From Lepidodermella squamata (lineage: Eukaryota; Animalia; Gastrotricha), in NCBI GenBank assembly GCA_047495785.1, contig JBLDXI010000020.1:1302001-1366000 (forward strand): a DNA stretch of 64,000 nucleotides, written 5' to 3'. The position numbers and the translations under genes were made by a program. Shown here in pieces: positions 27,618 through 52,500 of this stretch. The notes below the pieces were generated by a model. That model saw only the letters and a program-made list of their open reading frames with translations, ran no database searches and was not told the origin of the DNA. Every line of letters starts with the position of its first letter. Positions within the stretch are counted from its first letter, which is position 1.

Positions 27618-29257
27618 TTATTTCATCGTGACTACAATACGGGCTGTTGACAATGACATGAAGGCATCACTCATCTCATTTATAATGGGTCTTTCCAAGT
27701 TCACAAGTGATGCCACGACGCGGACAATCGCTGTTGCATAAGGCCAAGTATTCAAATGAAAATACTGTAATATTTCATAAAATTTCATTCGCCCGATCGC
27801 TCTCTCTATATGCACGCGGTTCCGCGCAACCTGCCTGGTATGTTCTATTTCATCTAAAGTAAATTGAGGTAAAAAAGCAAAGGGAGGTATGTTACATCCG
27901 ACATGTCGGGGCAAGATATCCTCAATCAAGAAACCCTTATCGGCTAGAATAAAATGACCGGGATCTTTAAGATGCTTCAAAAGACCGCCGTGAATGACAA
28001 CTTTCTTATCACTAGTACTGCCCGGAAATAAAGGTGACACAAAATTAATAGTACCACAAGGGGCGATTGAAACTAGTAGTTTGAGCGTAGTGCCACCACG
28101 ATAAGCGCTATACATTGGTTGTTTCAAGTTTAGATCTTTTCTGGGCTCGTCGCAAAAGAAATCAGTACAATCGATTATAAAAGTTGTCATTTCTAGAGAA
28201 GGTTTGAAGGAATTGGGCACAAAACTTGGATTTGTCGATTGCTCCAACGGAGGAGGTAATAAGAAGGCGTGGCTTAGCAGGTCGTCAAGAACCAAAATAA
28301 TGCTATTAAAAACATCCGCAGCAACGGTTTCAGAAATATCAAACATGTTAGCCAAAGTGTGATTTCTATGATTGAACCTCAGTTTAGCTAGAGTGAGATA
28401 TAATTGATCACGAATCGGAAGAATTGAACATTTATATGGGAAATAATCTTTAACATCATCAAGCAGACCATGTAGCGCATCAAAAGTTTGCAAATCTACC
28501 ATTCCTATTTCTTCAAGAAAATGCTTTTCTCCTCGTTCGAAACACTGTTGAGCAAACGACCATCGCGGCAAATCAGGATTAACAGGAGTTGGCTTATATC
28601 CTACATAAATTGTCGAAGAAGCACCAGCAATAAGGCTGACCTCTTTTTGTAGTTGACCTTGCGTAACTTCCTCCAGAGGGACCACCGTTGCTGCCACGTT
28701 ATCAACATCGATTGGTTCAGAAACAACTTCACTCAATTCGTGCGTTTGTTGCGTTTCCCCCGAATCATGAGCAGCATTCAAGTCCATTGCTGCAAAAAGA
28801 TCGCAAGGGTATGCGGTTGCTTCCTCCTGAGTCATTCCAGTTGCCATGGATGAAACGAAGTAGGCGTGCTCAGTCGCAATGGTGGGAACAGTATAAGAAT
28901 GATCCGGAGGTAGAACTCTAAATTTATATAAAAATGTATTCAAATAGGGACCGATTAATTCCACTATCTAAGACATACCTAAATTTATGCGGTGGCGATA
29001 ATGATTTTTCCCCGGAAAGATCCATGAGCCCTCGGTAGTGTACATCACATGCGCGATAGCCCCTTTTCCGAGCCTTCTCTGGAGTAACGCCTGTAATTCT
29101 AAACAAAAATGAATCACGGTCACTCAAAAATCATAGCAACACACTTAAGATATTTCAACCATTCAGCAGCTTCGCTTTCATTCTTTGGAAGTTTGACTCT
29201 GTGCAATCCTTTTCCACGAACTTGACAACTTCGATGGCAACAGTATGGAGCATTCAT
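27618..29257 (-). CDS. THAP + HTH + DDE_Tnp_4-type transposase
   Basis: Two small exons give MNAPYCCHRSC..EW..ACDVHY (THAP C2CH); the large exon has DQLYLTLAKLR..LANMFDISET (HTH), IIDCTD, ILADKGF and RVHIERAIGRMK (DDE triad). Confidence 0.92.
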
Positions 29258-33900: not shown

Positions 33901-34093
33901 CACTCCTTCACCCGAACCTCTCGCCAAACAGAACTCGAAACTATTAGTCGAAGCTCAAGCTGACGTTCATGCCTCTTATTCCGAAAGTCTCCCACTCGGA
34001 AAATCTCCCGCAATCAATTTTATTCGACCAGACACGGCCTCGGCAAGTGGCTCGCCCGAGAGCGGTAAACACAATGACAAAGTTTTGGTGTAA
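30985..34093 (+). CDS. ABCB9: ABCB half-transporter, ABCB9/TAP-like
   Basis: N-terminal TMD0-like hydrophobic region; RLLSFSKPD; GLRGGLF; QEVAFFD; Walker A GKSGSGKS; signature LSGGQKQR; Walker B LLLDEATSALD; H-loop AHRLST; about 8 exons. Orthology to ABCB9 is the best guess. Confidence 0.85.
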
Positions 34094-34326: not shown

Positions 34327-34956
34327 CTAAGGCAGATTTTTCATCTCGGATTCAAAGACCAGCTGAAGCCTTTTCAGGAACTTTTGCCATGATTCTACAT
34401 CATCTTCTGACATATCGTACCCTAGGACGTTCTTCATATTGGCAACAAATACCTCGAAAGAGATCTACAATATGAATTCAAGCGGTTAAAACAAAGTATT
34501 ACTATATAGGATAAAACGTACCATATAGTCCTGCGTTTTCAGATCGTGTTTCGTGTGACGTGGAGCGCGAACTAATCGTTCGATGCTTTTCCGTATAGCT
34601 GTTAGGAGGATCATTCAAACAGCATTGTTCGCAAAAATACATTTTACCTTCACTATCTTCAATATTATCCACCAGATCCACAACACCCGCGGCAAAGCGG
34701 GGTCCTTGTTCGCGCAGCCAAGGATTTTTCATCAATGTGTCGACGTCTAATGAAACTCCCCTCAGTGAGTAAAACATCGGCATATAGTTGGGATACGTCG
34801 TCAAGAATCTAAAATCCTAAGAAAGTGAGGACGATACGACAAAGCGATTTCATTGTTTTACGTGGCGTAGAATTTCAGCATGTTATCGGCTACGTTACAG
34901 GAAAATTTCGCCATAGTCTGACGTATCCGGGTTTTGTCATCAGGAGACAGCGCCAT
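34327..34956 (-). CDS. Globin A (TyrB10/GlnE7/PheE11)
   Basis: MALSPDDKTRIRQT..KFYAT|FLTTYPNYMPMF(CD1)..WLREQGPRF..PRH(F8)..DYM|..ESWQKF; introns at canonical B12.2 and G7.0 plus one in the EF region. Confidence 0.9.
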
Positions 34957-35138
34957 GAGGTTAATTTGTAAAATTTAACACAACCAAGTACTGAAAAAGT
35001 CAGATTCCCAAATTAAATCTTTTTACTGATGCGCGACAAATGGATGGAATTGAGAGCGAAAGATCAATTTTAGAAAAAAGTGCCGAGTGAATAGCCGACG
35101 TCTGACGTGTCTCAAATTGAAGATAGAAGTGCGTCTTA

Positions 35139-36045
35139 TTAAAACGGCAGTGAATAGGTCTTGCCCAGCGGTGCATGGTGACTCCTTTCCATTTTCTTCA
35201 TTTCGACATCAATGATGCCTTTTAGGCGCACTAAAAACCGATCCCATGCTTCGATATCTGGCCGAAACATTTGCTCAGCCAGAACGGTTTTCATATTTGC
35301 CGCGAACACGCCGAGTGCATTCTGGCAAAATTGTACAAATAAATTAAGGCAGCTTATATCGAAAAATGGCTTTTTTTGCTTACCATGTAGTCTTCAGATT
35401 TCAGGTTGTGTTTTGCATGCCTGGGTGCACGAACTAGGCGGCTAATACTTGCCTGAAGATCTGCAAACATTTACGGAATTTATTTAAATATTTACGGATT
35501 GGGGATCCAATTTAAAAAATATGTAAAACCTTCATAGCTATCCATATTGTCAACCAAATCCACGAAACCTGCTGCGAATCGGGGCGCTTGTTGTCTCAAC
35601 CTATAATCAAAATATTGCAATCTTATCGTTTTGTAATTGCGAAATTAGGAGAAACAACTTGAATCTTTTCAATGGGGTGCTTCCCTAATGGTAACTTAAT
35701 GTAAAGCTACCATGAGATGATATAGTTGGGAAAAATAAATTACTATATAAAATTTAGCGGGAACTAAGCTACAAATCGTAAGCCTTGTAGTAAGGATGTA
35801 GTAAAACTTACCATTCATTGCGAAGTAAGTTGTCAGGGGAAACGCCTTTCAAGGAGTAAAACATGGGCAGATACTGAGGATAGGTGGAGAAAAACCTTTG
35901 AAATGGCAAAGTGCGAAACGATGGGGACCGAAAAAATATATTTTTCTTACGCAACGAAGTATCGCATCATGTTGTCCTCGATATTGGCCACAAATTTGTT
36001 CATCGTATCGCGTATTCTCGTTTTGTCATCAGCCGATAAGGCCAT
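35139..36045 (-). CDS. Globin B (PheB10/GlnE7/PheE11)
   Basis: MALSADDKTRIRDT..RYFVA|FFSTYPQYLPMF..W|LRQQAPRF..PRH..DYM|..EAWDRF; 5 exons; clear paralog of globin A. Confidence 0.9.
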
Positions 36046-36729
36046 ATTGTCGGTATTTTTAATATAGCCTGCAATTTGTCCAGAATTTGTTAGAGCGCCC
36101 TGGTTTTTTACTAGGATTGAGAGCGCACTCTCAAGTTTGTATTGGATGTAGGTAATTGCCACTCGTTGGAATGAGTTGAACCCACGGGCTACGATAGAGT
36201 TTTATAAAAGCGGGGTCCGATACGCCCCAGCTCAGTTCCATTCACCTCGCCCAGTCCACTGATGACGCGCTAATTTGAAACAATGAGAAACGCTAAATTG
36301 GTGTCATTGCCTAAAATAGACCCGACGCTGAATTGAGCGGGAATTTGCAATAAATAGGTTTCTTTTTAAACCAGGCTGGCATTGAGCTCGGCAATAGAAT
36401 GAATTGAAAAGTGAAACGGCCATTCAGCTTTGCTCGACCTCATGATCTCGTAGCTTAGGTGACGTCCGTCAAAATTAAGGACGGCAATTTGTTTCACGTT
36501 GCCTGACAAGTATTTTTCTATTGAAAATTATTGAAGTCCTATGAAGGTTTGAAATTTGAAGCTCTATCCAAAAAAGTCAACGAAAGTGAGTCGTTCGAAA
36601 CACAGAGTTTCAAGTTTATTTTAAGATGGGTATTCAATATTATGAAGGAGTCTTTTTCGCCACAGATGGCGTTTCTACGCTGCAGTTGATTGTAGAATAA
36701 GGACTTGAGGTTTTAGATTCAGTTAATTC

Positions 36730-37430
36730 TCATTTATCGTTCTCGCCTTTGAATGAGGACTGGCACAGCATGCGTGCGAATTCTGAATGAAAAAGGTTCA
36801 ATTAGAATGCGGAAACGTCAGGTAAGGATGGCTGTGATTACCGAAGTAATCGATTTTGTGGTTAAAATCAAGATCAGCCTGGTCGACCATCGTCGTAACG
36901 AGTTCCAGAACTTCATTATCAGTTAGCTTATCATCGCCATAGTTCATTAAGTAATTCCTGAGACGTCAATGGCTTCATTAAAAGGAAAATAAAGCCTGAT
37001 TTTTTTCCTACCTCAATTCTCGAAATTCGATGAAGCCGCTTCCTGAATTCAAACGTGATTTCAATGATTGACGAATATAATCGAAATATTTTACTGTTTT
37101 TATCGAACGTGCGAAACGCTTCGACCATTCGTGTTTCAGCACCGCTCGTCCAAAACGCTGTAATCAGCGCATGGAACTCGTCGAATACCAGTTGGCGAGC
37201 TTCTTCGCTATTAGGGGCATCCTTCTTGGAATACTCTTTGCAAATGTCGACGCACTCGGCTTTTGTGGGATTCAATCCAAGCCCCCGTAGCACTTCAATC
37301 ACCTCATCTGTTGAATTTTATGATGAGTAATGAAAATTATTCGGCCAGTATAAATACCTGGTTGTAAAATGTCATCATGGTCGCGATCGAACGATTGGAA
37401 AATGCTGCGCAGTTCCTTCTCGTTCGGCAT
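36730..37430 (-). CDS. Calmodulin-like EF-hand protein
   Basis: Loops DRDHDDILQPDE, DKNRSGFIEFRE, DLDFNHKIDYFE; LGLNPTKAE; degenerate EF2; 5 exons. Confidence 0.85.
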
Positions 37431-38185
37431 ATTGAGCTTGGCCGAGAGCGCCTGTTGTTTAGAAGGACGCGAGGTAAGACGTTCTCTGAAGTCTAGAGAC
37501 ATTTTTTAATGGTGCAAAAAAAACCTGTTCACTCGTTAGCTTCAAATCCCGTTTGATCGACATCGCCCCGTTGCTAATTTGTTTTCACAGCTATCCACTT
37601 GAACGCTCGCTTCGCGCGTGATAGTATCTATGAAATGCGACGCAAATGGTGTAGTACTGAATTTAGAGGCGGACACCTTGGAGATTTTTTCGCATCACAC
37701 TCTCTTATTTTCGCAACACCCCTTTCATGTTCTCTTTTTGTTATTTTATTGCGCTTTTCACGCTCAATGCACCGCAGACACATCGACGCGGGCGCCTAGT
37801 AATATATCTGAAATAATTATCCTACTTCAATAGGTACATGTACATCTATGTAAAAAATACTTGACAGGTAAAAGTCTTAAAATAGAAAATTGACAAATTT
37901 GTATAGCTAGTTCGGCTAGTATTTAACTGGTTGAGGTAACGTTTTAGGGAGCGGCAATTCTATTGTGTTGCTTTGATTATTCAATAAACAGGTTGCGTGA
38001 TAGGTTGTCGTGGTGAAATTTCTTGCTTTATTTTTCAAAACACTGGGGTGGATAAAAAAACTTGCTTGACTCATATAGTTTGTGTGAAACCTGAACTTGA
38101 GTGAACTCGCGATGACTTTGTCGTGGGTGATAAAAGATAACAGACGAAGTTTAACGGAGTAAATGAAAAAAAATAGAGGAGTAAA

Positions 38186-41100
38186 ATGCTGAAGTCTGCT
38201 CTCGTTGCAGTTTTAATAGCAGGTGCTGTTGAGGGTCAATCAAACGCAGCTGACCAATGCATAAAATGCGATTGGCGCACAAATTTCTGTGGATGGATGA
38301 CACAGCCTTCGGTGTCAAATGGGACTGTACACTGGGTACGGGTGGAAAGTTTCTACCCACGCACGCCGAGTAAAGACCCAACCCGAACGGATGACGTTAA
38401 CGATCAAGTCATCAGTAGTAGTGCCAGGCTAACTGCAAGCTACTTCAGCGGCCAATATATTGACCCAAGTGCCTTCAATGCTACGTCAGCAGTCGCAACA
38501 CAACAAAGCGGACCATCTTTTTCCTCCGTTAATGATATCAATATGACAAGCTGTGTCTTGCCGGAGGTGGAACTGCCCCCGCGAATTTACGCCAGTAAAT
38601 CTAGCTTTTTGCAAATTTTCGCTACGCCTATTGGTTGTGATGGTGAAATTGTTGCTTGGAGATATCTGACGGCACCGTCGCCCCTAGCCAACCAAAGACA
38701 AGTCTATGCTTCAATCTGGGAACCTCTTTCGGTTGATAACGAGACGATGATTCTAGTTGGCTGGAACCTTCTTCCGACCGGAACGATAAATGAATGGCAG
38801 CAGTTCAATATCAACAAACCTGATAGGTTTGAAATATTTAAAATATTATTAAGGAGGGTTCAATTGTTTTTCAACTCAGAATCCGCGTGATGAGGGGTCA
38901 GTTCATCGGCCTTCACTATTTAAACATCACATATACGCACGAATACTCTGTTGTACCGCATTTCGAAACCATCGACAATGTTGGACCTTACTCCTCCACT
39001 ACTGTGAAAACCTATTCTCTTGATGTCAATCATGCCAAAATTCAGGAAAACTCGGCAGTTAAAATTAACCCTTCAACGGCGTCCCGACGATTGCCGGCTA
39101 TTAAAGCGATAATAAGAACTATTAGACCACAGACCGAGTTCAAATTCATCGGCGACTTTTACATTACGGCTGAAGCTTTGCCAGCGCTGCCTATCATTGG
39201 AACCGCGCAAGTCACTTCGCCACAAATACGGGTAAATGTTTTGGATTTTATGAGAAAGTTAAGTTTCCCAATACGGGGTTGCGTAATATTATTTAGCCGA
39301 TCTTCCGCGGTGCCGCTGGGCAACTTGGACATTGCTTGTTTTTCAAGTATTTTCTGAAGCATAGCGGCGCTCAAAGATCGTCGATAACAGCTTACATAAT
39401 CACGCCAGGAGCTGAACCGGAAACATTGGTCGTCAGAAATTCAGAGACTGTAACGGGAGCCGAATCAGCTTTCAGCTCAAATCGCCACTCGCCCACGTCC
39501 CCACCATGGAGCTATGCTAATGTCAAAATTACTCAAAGAGGCAAACCCTTCTCGGTCAGATAAATAGGAAAATTGGAATAGAAGGTTCAACAACAATTTT
39601 CTGATGTGATAGATCATGTTTGAAGCGAGCCCCGCTGTTGGAGGATCAGTTTCACTAGGCAGTGTTGAGATTGGCCCAGAACCTTGCACATGTTTGACCC
39701 AGAACTTTTATCGCCGAAATGAAATTCCGTCGTTATTGTTCGACAGATACCAGAGAAACTGACATATTGATCCCAACAGCTTCAATTCAATTCGGTCTAT
39801 TACAAAATGGTAAGATAAACATGGTTTAAAATTCTACCGCGTAGTTCATAGATCTTCTCAGGATTGATGTGGAACGATGGGCAGATTCCGTATCTGATCG
39901 AAAAGGAATTCAGTAAGAACTAGATTATAAGCTATAGGAATTTCATGGCTGTATAACGACACAGGTGCTGAGGAGAGACGCTTGATCGAAGAGTCTATGG
40001 ATGAATTTCGAGATGTCACATGCATCAACTTCAAACCATACATCGCTGATTCTCAAAACCCGTACGTGTCCTATGTGAAATTCAAACGGCCCACAGCAGG
40101 CTGCTCTACGGCGAAGTTCGAGCCTATGTAAGTCAAAATTCATCTTGAACTTTGGTTTCACATGTCCGCGAATAGGTGCTCGAGCTTTGTTGGGCCCCAA
40201 GCTCCTGAGCAGTTGACACCGTTTGGTGAACATCCAGTGTTTCTCGATCCTAGATGTTTCTACCCACAGGGGAGAATCCTTCACCTACTCACTCACATTG
40301 TCGGCCTTTGGCACGAAACAAATCGTGTTAGCCGCGACAAATACGTATCAATCAAGTGGGACAATATTCTATGGTGTAATAAGCATTTTGTCAACTTTAA
40401 ATTCCTGATTTATCGGTTTTCAATGCAGATCACAAGGGAGACTTTACGCCTTATTCGTTGACCAGCCAACTTTACATGAATCAGGAGGAATTCGACGCCG
40501 AATCAGTTACGCATCTCCCACCTGACGCTTACTCCGAAGATCGTTCTTCGTACACTTTCGAAATGCTGGATGACCCGCTGCAGATACCTGGGCAACGTTA
40601 TAAGCTTTCGAAAGGGGACATTGCGAAAATTAACTTTCTCTACGCCAACTTCCGATCATGCAGCTCGATAGCTAATGCAACTAGACCGACGACAAAAAGG
40701 CGAGTTGTAACGACCGCGGAAGTGACGACGGAAGAAACAACTGTGCCAACAACAACGACATCCAGACGGCGAACGACTACAACAACAACGGACGATGTTG
40801 GAACTGAAGAAATAACAACGAAGCCAACAACAACAGCTACAACAAGAAGGATGACGACTACGGCTACAACGGAGATGACCACAGTTTCGGAGGAGACAAC
40901 GCCTATTAGAACTAGATCCACAACGCGGCCGGTTACAACTGCAGAAACGGCAACTACTTCTGCAGCAACCGAAGCCAAAACTACTCAATCTTCCTTAGCC
41001 CCGACGACCTCCTCGACAATCGCAACTACAACCAGCGATTTAACCACTACAGGGAAAACCACGTCGACTACGAACGCAGCAACTCAATCTTCAGCTGCGC

Positions 41101-41261
41101 CTGCATTGGACGTGGTCTCCTCAACATCCTCGACTGATTCAGCGCCTTCGACAGCGTTGCCCTCGAAAGATACGAATTCAACTATGGAATTTACAACAGC
41201 GGTCGATGCGGCCAGGTTTATTGCGAACAATTCTTCGAATTCATTGTTACCTTCACCTTGA
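38186..41261 (+). CDS. Secreted MAM-like + astacin-like (probably inactive) + Thr-rich mucin protein
   Basis: Signal peptide; MAM-like CDW..FCGW..W and AQVTSP..CLFFKY..W..IMFEA; astacin WNDGQIPY..TCINFKP..CSSFVG..HLLTHIVGLWHETNR..RDKYVSI..GQRYKLSKGDIAKINFLY; Thr-rich tail. Confidence 0.82.
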
Positions 41262-49586: not shown

Positions 49587-52500
49587 ATGCCCCTCGAGCA
49601 TAACCTGAAAGCTGATGGACTTCGCTTTGCCCATAGTGATGGATATACGGATTTGTGCTTTTCGAAGGCTACAGGTAGGCTGGTTACTGCCGGAGACGAT
49701 GGTTATGCCTGTATATGGACCGACGGTGTTACGGAGGATAGCCAAATGATGCACCAGTTGGGTGATTCCGTTTCTTGCATCTCGCTGGCTGAGGTAAATT
49801 TTACCGTAAATACTGTTTGTAACTTCTAACGCAATGCTTTTTCGTAGGACGCCTTGCACGCTGTAATTGCTGGCAGCACATTATCCGAATTTGACTTCCC
49901 GAGTTGCTCCTTCAAACGTATATGTTTGAAGTTGTCCGATCAAATAACACATTTCGCCTCAAATAAGGCATGCACGACGCTTGCCGTTGGATCTTCGTTA
50001 GTTTTTCCATATCAACCTGGTTAAATGTTATCGTAACGTGCTTTTAGTGACTTCAAAATCCGTTTGCTTGATCGTGAGTCGCTAGCTGTACCGTTGAGCC
50101 TCAGCGAACATCAGGCCCCGGTGTTGAGTGTTGCTTTCTCAACAGGATCTGAAGAGCTACTGGTTCGCATCCTCTAACAAAATCCAATTCATACTCTTGA
50201 ATTATCATTCACAGGCATCTTCATCTTGTGATTCAACTGTTCGCCTTTGGTCGGCAAAGGATGGTAAATGTATCAGCACATTCGGACGCGTTCTGCCAAA
50301 GTCAAACGATGTCGCCAATAGCCATACTGTATGCAGATTACAATTTTCGAACGATTCTCAGGCAAGCTCCACTTGGGATTATGAACAATTATTTTTATTT
50401 TTTCTACTATATGCAGAAGCTTTACGTGCCCACTGAAGGGGAAATAAAGGTCTACGATGTGCGAAACTGGCATAAGCCGTGCGACAAAATCGATCTACCG
50501 AAAAAGACGCTTGTTTCATCAAGTGTGCGCTTCTCAAGCAGCGGTAACTATTTCGCGGCGATCTGCAAAGAAGTGCTAGCAGTTTATTCACTTTCTAAAT
50601 CCCAATGGGTCGCTCGACTTACTCATCAGCGCCCGTTATGTGCTGTCGCCTGGAACCCTGTTACCGCGAACCGCCTAGCTTTCACTGATAACCGTGGTCA
50701 GTTGGGGTTTGTCACCGTTCCAATGGATGAGAAAGGCTCGAATAGCGCGAAACCAGTTTCAAGCGACATTGAAATGGCGGAGGATGATGACGCTGCGTTG
50801 ATGGCAGTCGCTGCCGAGCTGTGCGAGGATGACTTGTCGAAATCGGGCAGCGAAAAAGCTGATATGGATGTGTCAGTTAAAGAACACGAAAATCTTAAAT
50901 TATCCGACGATGAAGACGAACCAGTTACCAAAATAACAAAACCGCAGAAATCGAAGCAAGAAAGCAAAAAGGATCTGCTGAAAAAATTCGCGAAAAATGA
51001 CGACGAGGACGAGTCAAATTCAGCACCACTAAAACTGGACGATGATAACGATAGTTTGGGTGACGATGATAAAATCACGGATTTAGGCCGTATTCGCAGC
51101 GAGTTTAAAGAGTTTTTCGACGACGAAGACGAGGATGATGACGAAGATGATGATAACGCAAAAGAAAAAGACGCTAAAATGTCGACTCCTTCGAAAAAAG
51201 CCGCACCCGGGCCTTCAGCGCCAACAGGTCCAACCGTCGTTCAATCGAAACCCGTCGATTCACATTTGCAACCAGCATTTCAGGTGCACTCGACACCGGC
51301 GGGTCGAGGCGGGCAAAATTCGCGTTTTCTCGTCTGGAACCAACTCGGAGTAGTTCGTCTGTACGAATCTGAGGCTGAAAATTCGGTTGAAGTCGAGTTT
51401 CATGACACGTCAATCCACCCGCCGATCTCCTTGAGTAGCTCTGACGAATTCACCCTTGCCGCCTTAACTGCCGATGTTTTGGTGCTTTGCACAACATCTG
51501 GTGAGTCTAGTGATGAAGATGATTCAGGTCAGAAATGCCGGTTGAGGGTTCTGACCCTTTCTGCCTGGGACTCGAGCCGCGAGTGGCTACTTGACCTACC
51601 TTCGGGTGAACTTTGCGTATCAGTCGCTGTTGGATCTCGCTGGATTGCTGTTGTTACAAACACTAACTTTGTCAGATTATTTTCACTGGCCGGTTTTCAA
51701 TTGGGAATTATCTCGATCCCAGGAACCCCGGTCACCTCAGCTGGTTCCGGTGAACAATTAGCTGTGGTCTACCACAACGGAATCGGTGCTAATCAGTCGC
51801 AAAATTTGGGATTTGAGTTGTACAAAATTACGCAATCGCCAAAGTTAGTTTCGAGCGGAAATTTGCCGATTACCCCGAAATCTACGTTGAATTGGCTCGG
51901 TTTCGGCCAAGATTACGGCACACTGTTAGCCGCTGATACGACTTCGATTCTGCGTGCTCTTACCCTGCCAAATCGAAGCTGGACTCCGGTTGCTAACATG
52001 CGAAAATGCGGTCAAATCAAATCACGAGCTGATCATTGTAAGTTGCGGTAAAAAAAGTTTAAGGTCGATAATTATTTTTTCATCAGACTGGATGGTTGGT
52101 GTTTCTGAAAAGCAACAGCAAGTATTTGCCATCTTTTGTAAAGCTGGACACTACCCCGCTGTTCTTCCTCGTCCGATTCTGTCCACCGTGCCTCTTGGCG
52201 TTCCGGTTTGCGATGCCGGAACTGACGGCGGGAAATTGGCCGATGAAGCCATGCGACTTCGAGTTTTCAGCCAAGCCGCTCATCAAGAGGAGTCCGATTT
52301 GAAATTGCAAGAAACTTTGATGCGACTTTATGCTGTCAGTTTTTTCCTTTTTCACACTGTCTTCTAAATTTACGCATTTTTAATTGAAATTAAAAAATTG
52401 TAATTCTTCAAGCAAAATTAAGCTTTTTTTTAATTAGATTGCCGTGAAGCAAGACAGGCAGTGTCGGGCTGCTGAAATAGCCGAATCTATGCCGACACCA

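Follow-up and report, generated by a model that had tools for sequence, protein, structure and literature searches.

Reciprocal B9/B10 residue swap in a tandem pair of transcribed globin genes from Lepidodermella squamata

Results

Within 64,000 nucleotides of the gastrotrich Lepidodermella squamata (contig JBLDXI010000020.1, forward-strand positions 1,302,001 to 1,366,000; this whole stretch is called the window and is numbered from its first letter), we have identified two intact globin genes lying head to tail on the minus strand in the interval 34327–36045, named here globin A and globin B. Both genes are transcribed, and in the predicted haem pockets of their products a common frame with Gln at helix position E7 and Phe at E11 is combined with a reciprocal swap of the residues at B9 and B10, which are Phe-Tyr in globin A and Tyr-Phe in globin B. 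An earlier annotation of this DNA (the sequence-only reading) did not contain this swap. With moderate confidence, we take the most likely reading to be that the two are ordinary cytoplasmic haem globins which differ from each other in their kinetics.

Gene structure and transcription

Globin A runs on the minus strand from its ATG at 34956 to its stop codon at 34329–34327 and encodes 156 amino acids in four exons (34956–34862, 34808–34648, 34598–34522 and 34464–34327), separated by three introns that measure 53, 49 and 57 nt. Globin B lies on the same strand, from its ATG at 36045 to its stop codon at 35141–35139, and encodes 169 amino acids in five exons (36045–35951, 35895–35812, 35600–35530, 35460–35384 and 35321–35139), with four introns of 55, 211, 69 and 62 nt. 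Every intron of the two genes has GT..AG borders. One intron is specific to globin B and absent from globin A, and it interrupts the codon located four residues ahead of E7. The C-terminal tail of globin B is also 13 residues longer than that of globin A. Both proteins are single-domain globins, without a signal peptide and without an N-terminal Gly for lipidation. The spacer between the stop codon of globin B and the start codon of globin A (34957–35138, minus strand) is short, and contains the 3′ untranslated region of the former and the 5′ untranslated region of the latter. A third globin was not found when both proteins were compared by tblastn with the 64-kb window.

Two public sequencing runs cover this locus. 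In the first (X1, 2024) the stretch is present as unspliced DNA contigs, while the second (X2, 2015) covers about its exonic half, and in X2 contigs placed on the stretch precisely the predicted introns are missing. The four introns of globin B all appear as joints within a single 598-nt X2 contig. Introns 1 and 3 of globin A are joints as well (34808/34862 and 34464/34522, respectively), and at intron 2 there is only a 9-letter loose end at 34600, the letters of which are those of 34650–34658. Two X2 contigs terminate in the SMART complementary DNA (cDNA) oligo, one at 35018, 62 nt before the ATG of globin A, and the other at 36144, 99 nt before the ATG of globin B. As these contigs end in the SMART oligo, X2 is cDNA and both globin genes are transcribed; the depth of the X2 contigs can neither rank the expression of A against that of B nor give their stoichiometry.

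It is worth mentioning that only ~74 nt lie between the 3′ end of the globin B cDNA contig (~35093) and the 5′ end of the globin A cDNA (35018). In addition, an acceptor-like TTTTTCAG is located upstream of the globin A start codon, ending at 34991, and an acceptor-like AATTGCAG upstream of the globin B start codon, ending at 36069. The acceptor-like motifs together with the narrow gap would fit trans-splicing and an operon-like layout, against which speaks the termination of the A and B cDNA contigs in the SMART oligo rather than in a spliced leader.

Identification as globins

The database searches were made with exon pieces of the two genes. The Pfam Globin profile (PF00042) matched exon 2 of globin A at 17.5 bits (E 0.006, profile positions 7–56) and exon 4 at 13.7 bits (E 0.091, profile positions 85–113); taken singly both scores are under the 22-bit cut-off, and the two matches are colinear and sum roughly to 31 bits. 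In an ESM Atlas feature search with exon 2 of globin A, 28 of the 30 matches shared the family set of the first match, Globin. The N-terminus, Leu-Ser-x-Asp-Asp-Lys-Thr, resembles the start of the haemoglobin alpha chain, as seen in an 11-residue A-helix match in the PDB. Moreover, the canonical metazoan intron positions B12.2 and G7.0, which match those described in PMC4732748, are found in both genes, and Phe-CD1 and His-F8 occur at the canonical spacing (Phe44 and His100 in globin A, Phe44 and His98 in globin B).

Broader searches revealed no relative of the two globins. No candidate came from a protein search by word index with region 4–56 of the stop-free stretch that surrounds exon 2 of globin A, and HMMER, run exhaustively against 1.84 billion representatives with an exon-2 profile, gave a single spurious repeat protein (P0001). 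Scanning JGI metagenome contigs with exon 2 and with the alignment of the F-helix exon revealed no relative, nor did PDB searches with exon 2 singly and with profiles of exon 1, the last exon and the F-helix exon reveal any globin other than in the 11-residue A-helix match. Rfam had no match over the whole window.

Assignment of the pocket residues

The residue assignments for the two pockets are supported in three ways, namely by intron spacing, by alignment to haemoglobin III (HbIII) of Lucina pectinata and by alignment to the Escherichia coli flavohaemoglobin Hmp. By these assignments, the pocket of globin A consists of Phe29 (B9), Tyr30 (B10), Phe44 (CD1), Gln66 (E7), Phe70 (E11) and His100 (F8), and that of globin B of Tyr29 (B9), Phe30 (B10), Phe44 (CD1), Gln64 (E7), Phe68 (E11) and His98 (F8).

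Intron 1 of both genes interrupts a codon two residues past B10 between its second and third bases, corresponding to the B12.2 position, and Pro38 at C2 and Phe44 at CD1 follow B10 by 8 and 14 residues, respectively. These are standard globin spacings, and the numbering which the sequence-only reading had derived from the B12.2 intron, ProC2 and PheCD1 holds. The B9–B10 codons of globin A, TTC TAC (Phe29-Tyr30), lie at 34867–34872 (minus strand) and are placed by the B12.2 intron, the C2 Pro and the alignment to Phe28-Tyr29 of Hmp; those of globin B, TAC TTC (Tyr29-Phe30), lie at 35956–35961 (minus strand), in a stretch where A and B are aligned with no indel. Position and identity of both B10 codons, TAC for Tyr in globin A (34869–34867) and TTC for Phe in globin B (35958–35956), agree with that reading, and the TAC codon of Tyr29 in globin B occupies 35961–35959. 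The B9 change and the B10 change each consist of a single A/T difference at the second codon base.

The E7–E11 segment of globin A, Gln66-Gly-Pro-Arg-Phe70 (34694–34708, minus strand), is aligned to Gln66..Phe70 of HbIII and to Gln53..Leu57 of Hmp, and the corresponding Gln64-Ala-Pro-Arg-Phe68 of globin B (35576–35590, minus strand) falls in identical alignment columns. The Gln codons are at 34708–34706 in A and 35590–35588 in B, and the Phe codons at 34696–34694 and 35578–35576. In both globins Pro-E9 and Arg-E10 thus stand near the distal Gln, which makes for an unusual globin E helix. The F helix is unusual for a globin as well, the proximal His being part of an invariant Arg-Leu-Val-Arg-Ala-Pro-Arg-His (34555–34578 in A and 35417–35440 in B).

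The proximal His100 (F8) of globin A, at 34555–34557 (minus strand), is aligned to His85 of Hmp, and His98 of globin B, at 35417–35419 (minus strand), shares its column. With F8 placed at these residues, the last intron, which is of phase 0 and comes 12 residues after His100 in globin A, lies at G7.0. With this placement the FG corner is shorter by one residue than in myoglobin, under the myoglobin numbering that we assume. His103 of globin A was also considered as F8 and was rejected: the last intron would then fall at about G3 and Asp would occupy the FG5 haem contact, whereas with His100 the intron is at G7.0, Leu is at the FG5 haem contact and the alignment to His85 of Hmp is obtained.

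A central-exon profile (alignment A3), composed of exon 2 of globin A and the two matching exons of globin B, was searched against all PDB chain sequences. Its only globin match was HbIII of Lucina pectinata (3pt8_B, 3pt7_B and 6otw_B; E 0.01–0.018, 19 bits), and haemoglobin I (HbI) was not among the PDB matches of this profile at E up to 10. In the HbIII alignment the Pro at C2 is paired with Pro39, the Phe at CD1 with Phe45, the Gln at E7 with Gln66 and the Phe at E11 with Phe70. Counting eight residues back from Pro39 puts B10 of HbIII at residue 31, which gives a B10–E7 span of 35, like that of haemoglobin II (HbII; Tyr30/Gln65). A full-length A+B profile, derived from the window sequence, was compared by hhalign with the Hmp globin domain in global and local modes. 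In both modes Phe29-Tyr30 of globin A was paired with Phe28-Tyr29, Phe44 with Phe43, Gln66 with Gln53, Phe70 with Leu57 and His100 with His85, which we take to be B9-B10, CD1, E7, E11 and F8 of Hmp; the distance from E7 to F8 in globins A and B is two residues longer than in Hmp. The score of this alignment is weak (18.9, compared with 12.1 ± 3.2 for shuffles, or ~2 standard deviations), and it serves as supporting evidence and not as independent proof. The Gln-E7 and Phe-E11 previously proposed for both paralogues are placed there by the HbIII and Hmp alignments, and no other residue is put at E7 or E11 by the comparison with Lucina, in which B10 was reached by count.

Selective constraint and age of the duplication

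A second haplotype of globin A is carried by both X1 and X2. Out of 13 exonic differences between the alleles 12 are synonymous and one is non-synonymous (Ser136Ala), and six further differences are found in the introns; the codons for B9/B10, E7 and E11 are untouched. Since synonymous sites make up ~21% of all sites, the 12:1 allelic ratio has P <1e-5 under neutrality (binomial arithmetic), and globin A is under purifying selection. In globin B the haplotype differences are only intronic. Heterozygosity or polymorphism is strong in the region 34331–34875 of globin A; among the 209 positions of 34667–34875, 10 are different in two X1 contigs, and a 3-nt insertion is found at 34632 in intron 2.

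Over 154 aligned residues, globins A and B share 58% identity; their non-synonymous divergence (dN) is 0.33 and their synonymous divergence (dS) is saturated. The identity of 58%, the saturated dS and the unequal numbers of introns indicate that the duplication is old and that both copies were kept. To judge from this divergence, the pair is an ancient tandem duplication; the local duplication that had been proposed is thus borne out as to its tandem nature, but it is of ancient date.

Genomic neighbourhood

On one side the pair adjoins an opposite-strand ABC-transporter gene, the end of which is near 34093, and on the other side open reading frames (ORFs) with EF-hand-like motifs. Two such adjoining ORFs occupy 36931–37502 (minus strand), directly upstream of globin B and on the same strand; the one at 36931–37302 had no Pfam match at 1e-4. 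The remaining window contains housekeeping genes (WDR47-, WDHD1-, DCAF12-, TM9SF- and RhoGAP-like) and a Harbinger-type transposase. The latter is an intact ORF of 448 amino acids with DDE_Tnp_4 and HTH_Tnp_4 domains (27618–28964, minus strand), of the Harbinger/PIF type, and may still be active. Another ORF, of 267 amino acids (40458–41261, plus strand), has a long Thr-rich mucin-like repeat region.

The long exon of the WDHD1/Ctf4-like gene (50228–52051, plus strand) is matched at 50% identity on each of two metagenome contigs from ENA (L001, 842–2707; L002, 348–2213), and the long-exon layout is shared with these counterparts. A counterpart of such identity indicates that a relative of this animal occurs in environmental samples, and the fact that the other WDHD1/Ctf4-like matches are only ~30% identical indicates that the lineage is very divergent.

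Discussion

A probable division of labour between two paralogues

Our preferred interpretation is that the two paralogues divide their labour by kinetics or by affinity, with O2, NO and H2S as candidate ligands in vivo. The structure of the genes, their expression, the selective constraint and the identities of the residues were read directly from the data, and it is from these that we infer all ligand behaviour discussed here. An ancient tandem duplication would have yielded two functional, cytoplasmic, single-domain haem globins, both of which keep the ligand-site frame of Phe-CD1, Gln-E7, Arg-E10, Phe-E11 and His-F8, and the main difference between them is the reciprocal B9/B10 swap. In globin A, Tyr-B10 and Gln-E7 are predicted to hydrogen-bond the bound oxygen (O2), so that ligands would enter and leave slowly and the pocket would form a tight, high-affinity cage, comparable to those of Lucina HbII and HbIII, Ascaris haemoglobin and flavohaemoglobin. 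In globin B the hydroxyl would be displaced from the ligand site to B9, and the pocket would be an apolar aromatic cage of Phe-B10, Phe-CD1 and Phe-E11, in which Gln-E7 would be the sole hydrogen-bond partner. Ligand entry would then be much faster and the stabilisation of O2 weaker. In fact, a Phe-B10-to-Tyr mutant of Lucina HbI was reported to have a closed distal site and an O2 association rate ~30-fold lower (PMC2657002). Ferric globin B could also hold hydrogen sulfide (H2S) without forming sulfhaem, because its E7 residue is not His; Gln instead of His at E7 was reported to prevent sulfhaem formation (PMC9926313).

Several points weigh against such a kinetically differentiated pair of ordinary globins. 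The exons of globin B taken alone had no Pfam match, and solved globins are matched weakly (HbIII at E 0.01, Hmp at z ~2 against shuffles). Tyr-B9 of globin B might still reach the pocket. Moreover, the Pro two residues past the distal Gln likely kinks helix E, and with Pro-E9, an E7–F8 interval longer by two residues and a Pro located two positions ahead of the proximal His, it could be that the rules established for Lucina do not transfer to these proteins.

Alternative readings

A and B could instead be enzymatic or signalling globins, acting as a nitric oxide (NO) dioxygenase, a nitrite reductase or a redox sensor, where the pocket of globin A would stabilise ferric-superoxide as in flavohaemoglobin; such roles have been put forward for numerous globins of expanded invertebrate families. 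Tyr-B10/Gln-E7 is indeed the catalytic pocket of the E. coli NO dioxygenase, Hmp being described with Tyr-B10, Gln-E7, Leu-E11 and Lys-F7 (PMC7948479), and the full-length profile is colinear with Hmp. However, E11 is Phe in both globins instead of the gating Leu, and neither a reductase domain nor a partner gene is found nearby in the 64-kb window. We regard this role as unlikely, yet worth keeping in mind.

The sequence-only reading had likened the pair to the split between HbI and HbII/HbIII in Lucina. According to this alternative, globin B would be a sulfide carrier or buffer holding H2S on ferric haem like HbI, and globin A an oxygen carrier staying oxygenated in the presence of sulfide, the two having evolved independently in an animal that lives in sulfidic sediments. 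Ferric HbI takes up H2S with a kon of 2.3e5 per M per s and a koff of 0.22e-3 per s, whereas HbII and HbIII remain oxygenated (PMC4732748). Globin B has the Phe-B10/Phe-CD1/Gln-E7/Phe-E11 arrangement of HbI, which was described as unique (PMC4732748), and globin A has the full oxygen-reactive set of lucinids and vesicomyids (PMC9690805 Table 1; PMC7826175). HbIII is also the best sequence match among solved structures, and the two genes are adjacent and both expressed. Nonetheless, B9 of globin B is Tyr, whereas the HbI pocket is made of four Phe, with Phe-B9 setting the orientation of the B10 and E11 rings (PMC9690805), and a myoglobin triple mutant that copied B10, E7 and E11 without Phe-B9 destabilised the ligand (PMC9690805). 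Residues E8–E10 and the F helix are unlike those of Lucina, and no sulfide-oxidation or sulfide-metabolism gene was seen within the 64-kb window. Furthermore, Tyr-B10/Gln-E7 is already the usual invertebrate pocket (PMC2657002). Taken together, a two-component sulfide/oxygen system appears improbable. It is similarly doubtful that globin B is a second natural HbI-type sulfide-binding haemoglobin, evolved independently outside the lucinids and acting beside an oxygen-holding Tyr-B10 paralogue in a small invertebrate with a compact genome, and that the Phe/Tyr swap at B9/B10 acts as a two-nucleotide switch of ligand specificity.

Least probable of all, and rather remote, would be a single hetero-oligomeric haemoglobin in which A and B join as subunits, in the manner of HbII and HbIII or of the vertebrate alpha and beta chains, with the swap tuning the heterogeneity of the subunits instead of setting two functions apart: the genes are adjacent and co-oriented with ~74 nt between the cDNA ends, both are present in X2, and HbII assembles with HbIII into mixed dimers and tetramers (PMC4732748), both chains being contained in PDB 3pt8, but no interface is indicated by the sequence and the C-terminal tail of globin B is 13 residues longer.

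HbI, with its all-aromatic Gln-E7 pocket, is the textbook case of a haemoglobin that became a sulfide carrier. A natural pair from a very different and highly divergent globin lineage, with Phe and Tyr swapped between B9 and B10 on a common Gln-E7/Phe-E11 frame, may serve as an evolutionary replicate of this case, in which the determinants of O2 versus H2S behaviour could be tested; the differences being single A/T changes at second codon bases, reciprocal mutants are trivial to make. A sulfide/oxygen function is a reasonable hypothesis with a low prior, and the pair is a testable candidate for it. If the two are ordinary oxygen-binding globins, in line with the division of labour that we favour, they would still document how tuning of B10 comes about within an expanded invertebrate globin family.

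Comparison with known globins

Globin A has the Tyr-B10/Gln-E7 hydrogen-bonding pair in common with Ascaris haemoglobin and with the bacterial flavohaemoglobin Hmp. In these Tyr-B10/Gln-E7 globins E11 is Leu or Ile, whereas it is Phe in globins A and B. The A+B profile is colinear with the globin domain of Hmp, with B9-B10, CD1, E7, E11 and F8 in matching columns, yet the segment from CD to E is 12 residues shorter in Hmp, and Hmp has a reductase domain which globins A and B are without.

With HbII and HbIII of Lucina (Phacoides) pectinata and with the vesicomyid haemoglobins, globin A shares its residues at B9, B10, CD1, E7, E11 and F8. HbII, HbIII and all Calyptogena haemoglobins are listed with Phe-B9/Tyr-B10/Gln-E7/Phe-E11 (PMC9690805 Table 1), and Tyr-B10/Gln-E7/Phe-E11 is conserved across lucinid and vesicomyid haemoglobins that share <30% identity (PMC7826175). 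In HbII it is Tyr30(B10) and Gln65(E7) that anchor O2 (PMC4732748). The B12.2 and G7.0 introns are common to HbII, HbIII and globin A. The central-exon match to HbIII also extends beyond the pocket, to a Val-Asp-Asn at the end of helix E followed by an Asp and a Glu, and as a whole it is marginal (E 0.01, 19 bits). As for differences, E8–E10 is Ser-Leu-Val in HbIII and Gly-Pro-Arg in globin A, and relative to HbII and HbIII the E7–F8 interval of globin A is longer by two residues and its EF corner has an extra intron, while no pre-coding intron was seen in this gene.

Globin B shares with HbI the residues Phe-B10, Phe-CD1, Gln-E7 and Phe-E11, its small single-domain form and its pairing with a Tyr-B10 paralogue. 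It differs from HbI by Ala-Pro-Arg at E8–E10 and by its C-terminal tail, and where HbI is listed with Phe-B9/Phe-B10/Gln-E7/Phe-E11 (PMC9690805 Table 1), the fourth Phe of the cage, at B9, is replaced in globin B by Tyr29. The likeness to the Lucina split that had been proposed therefore stands for globin A, which has the HbII/HbIII set at 5 of 5 positions, and stands for globin B with the exception of B9. Residue by residue, the Lucina analogy is accurate at the level of the predicted pockets, being complete for globin A and holding at all positions but B9 for globin B.

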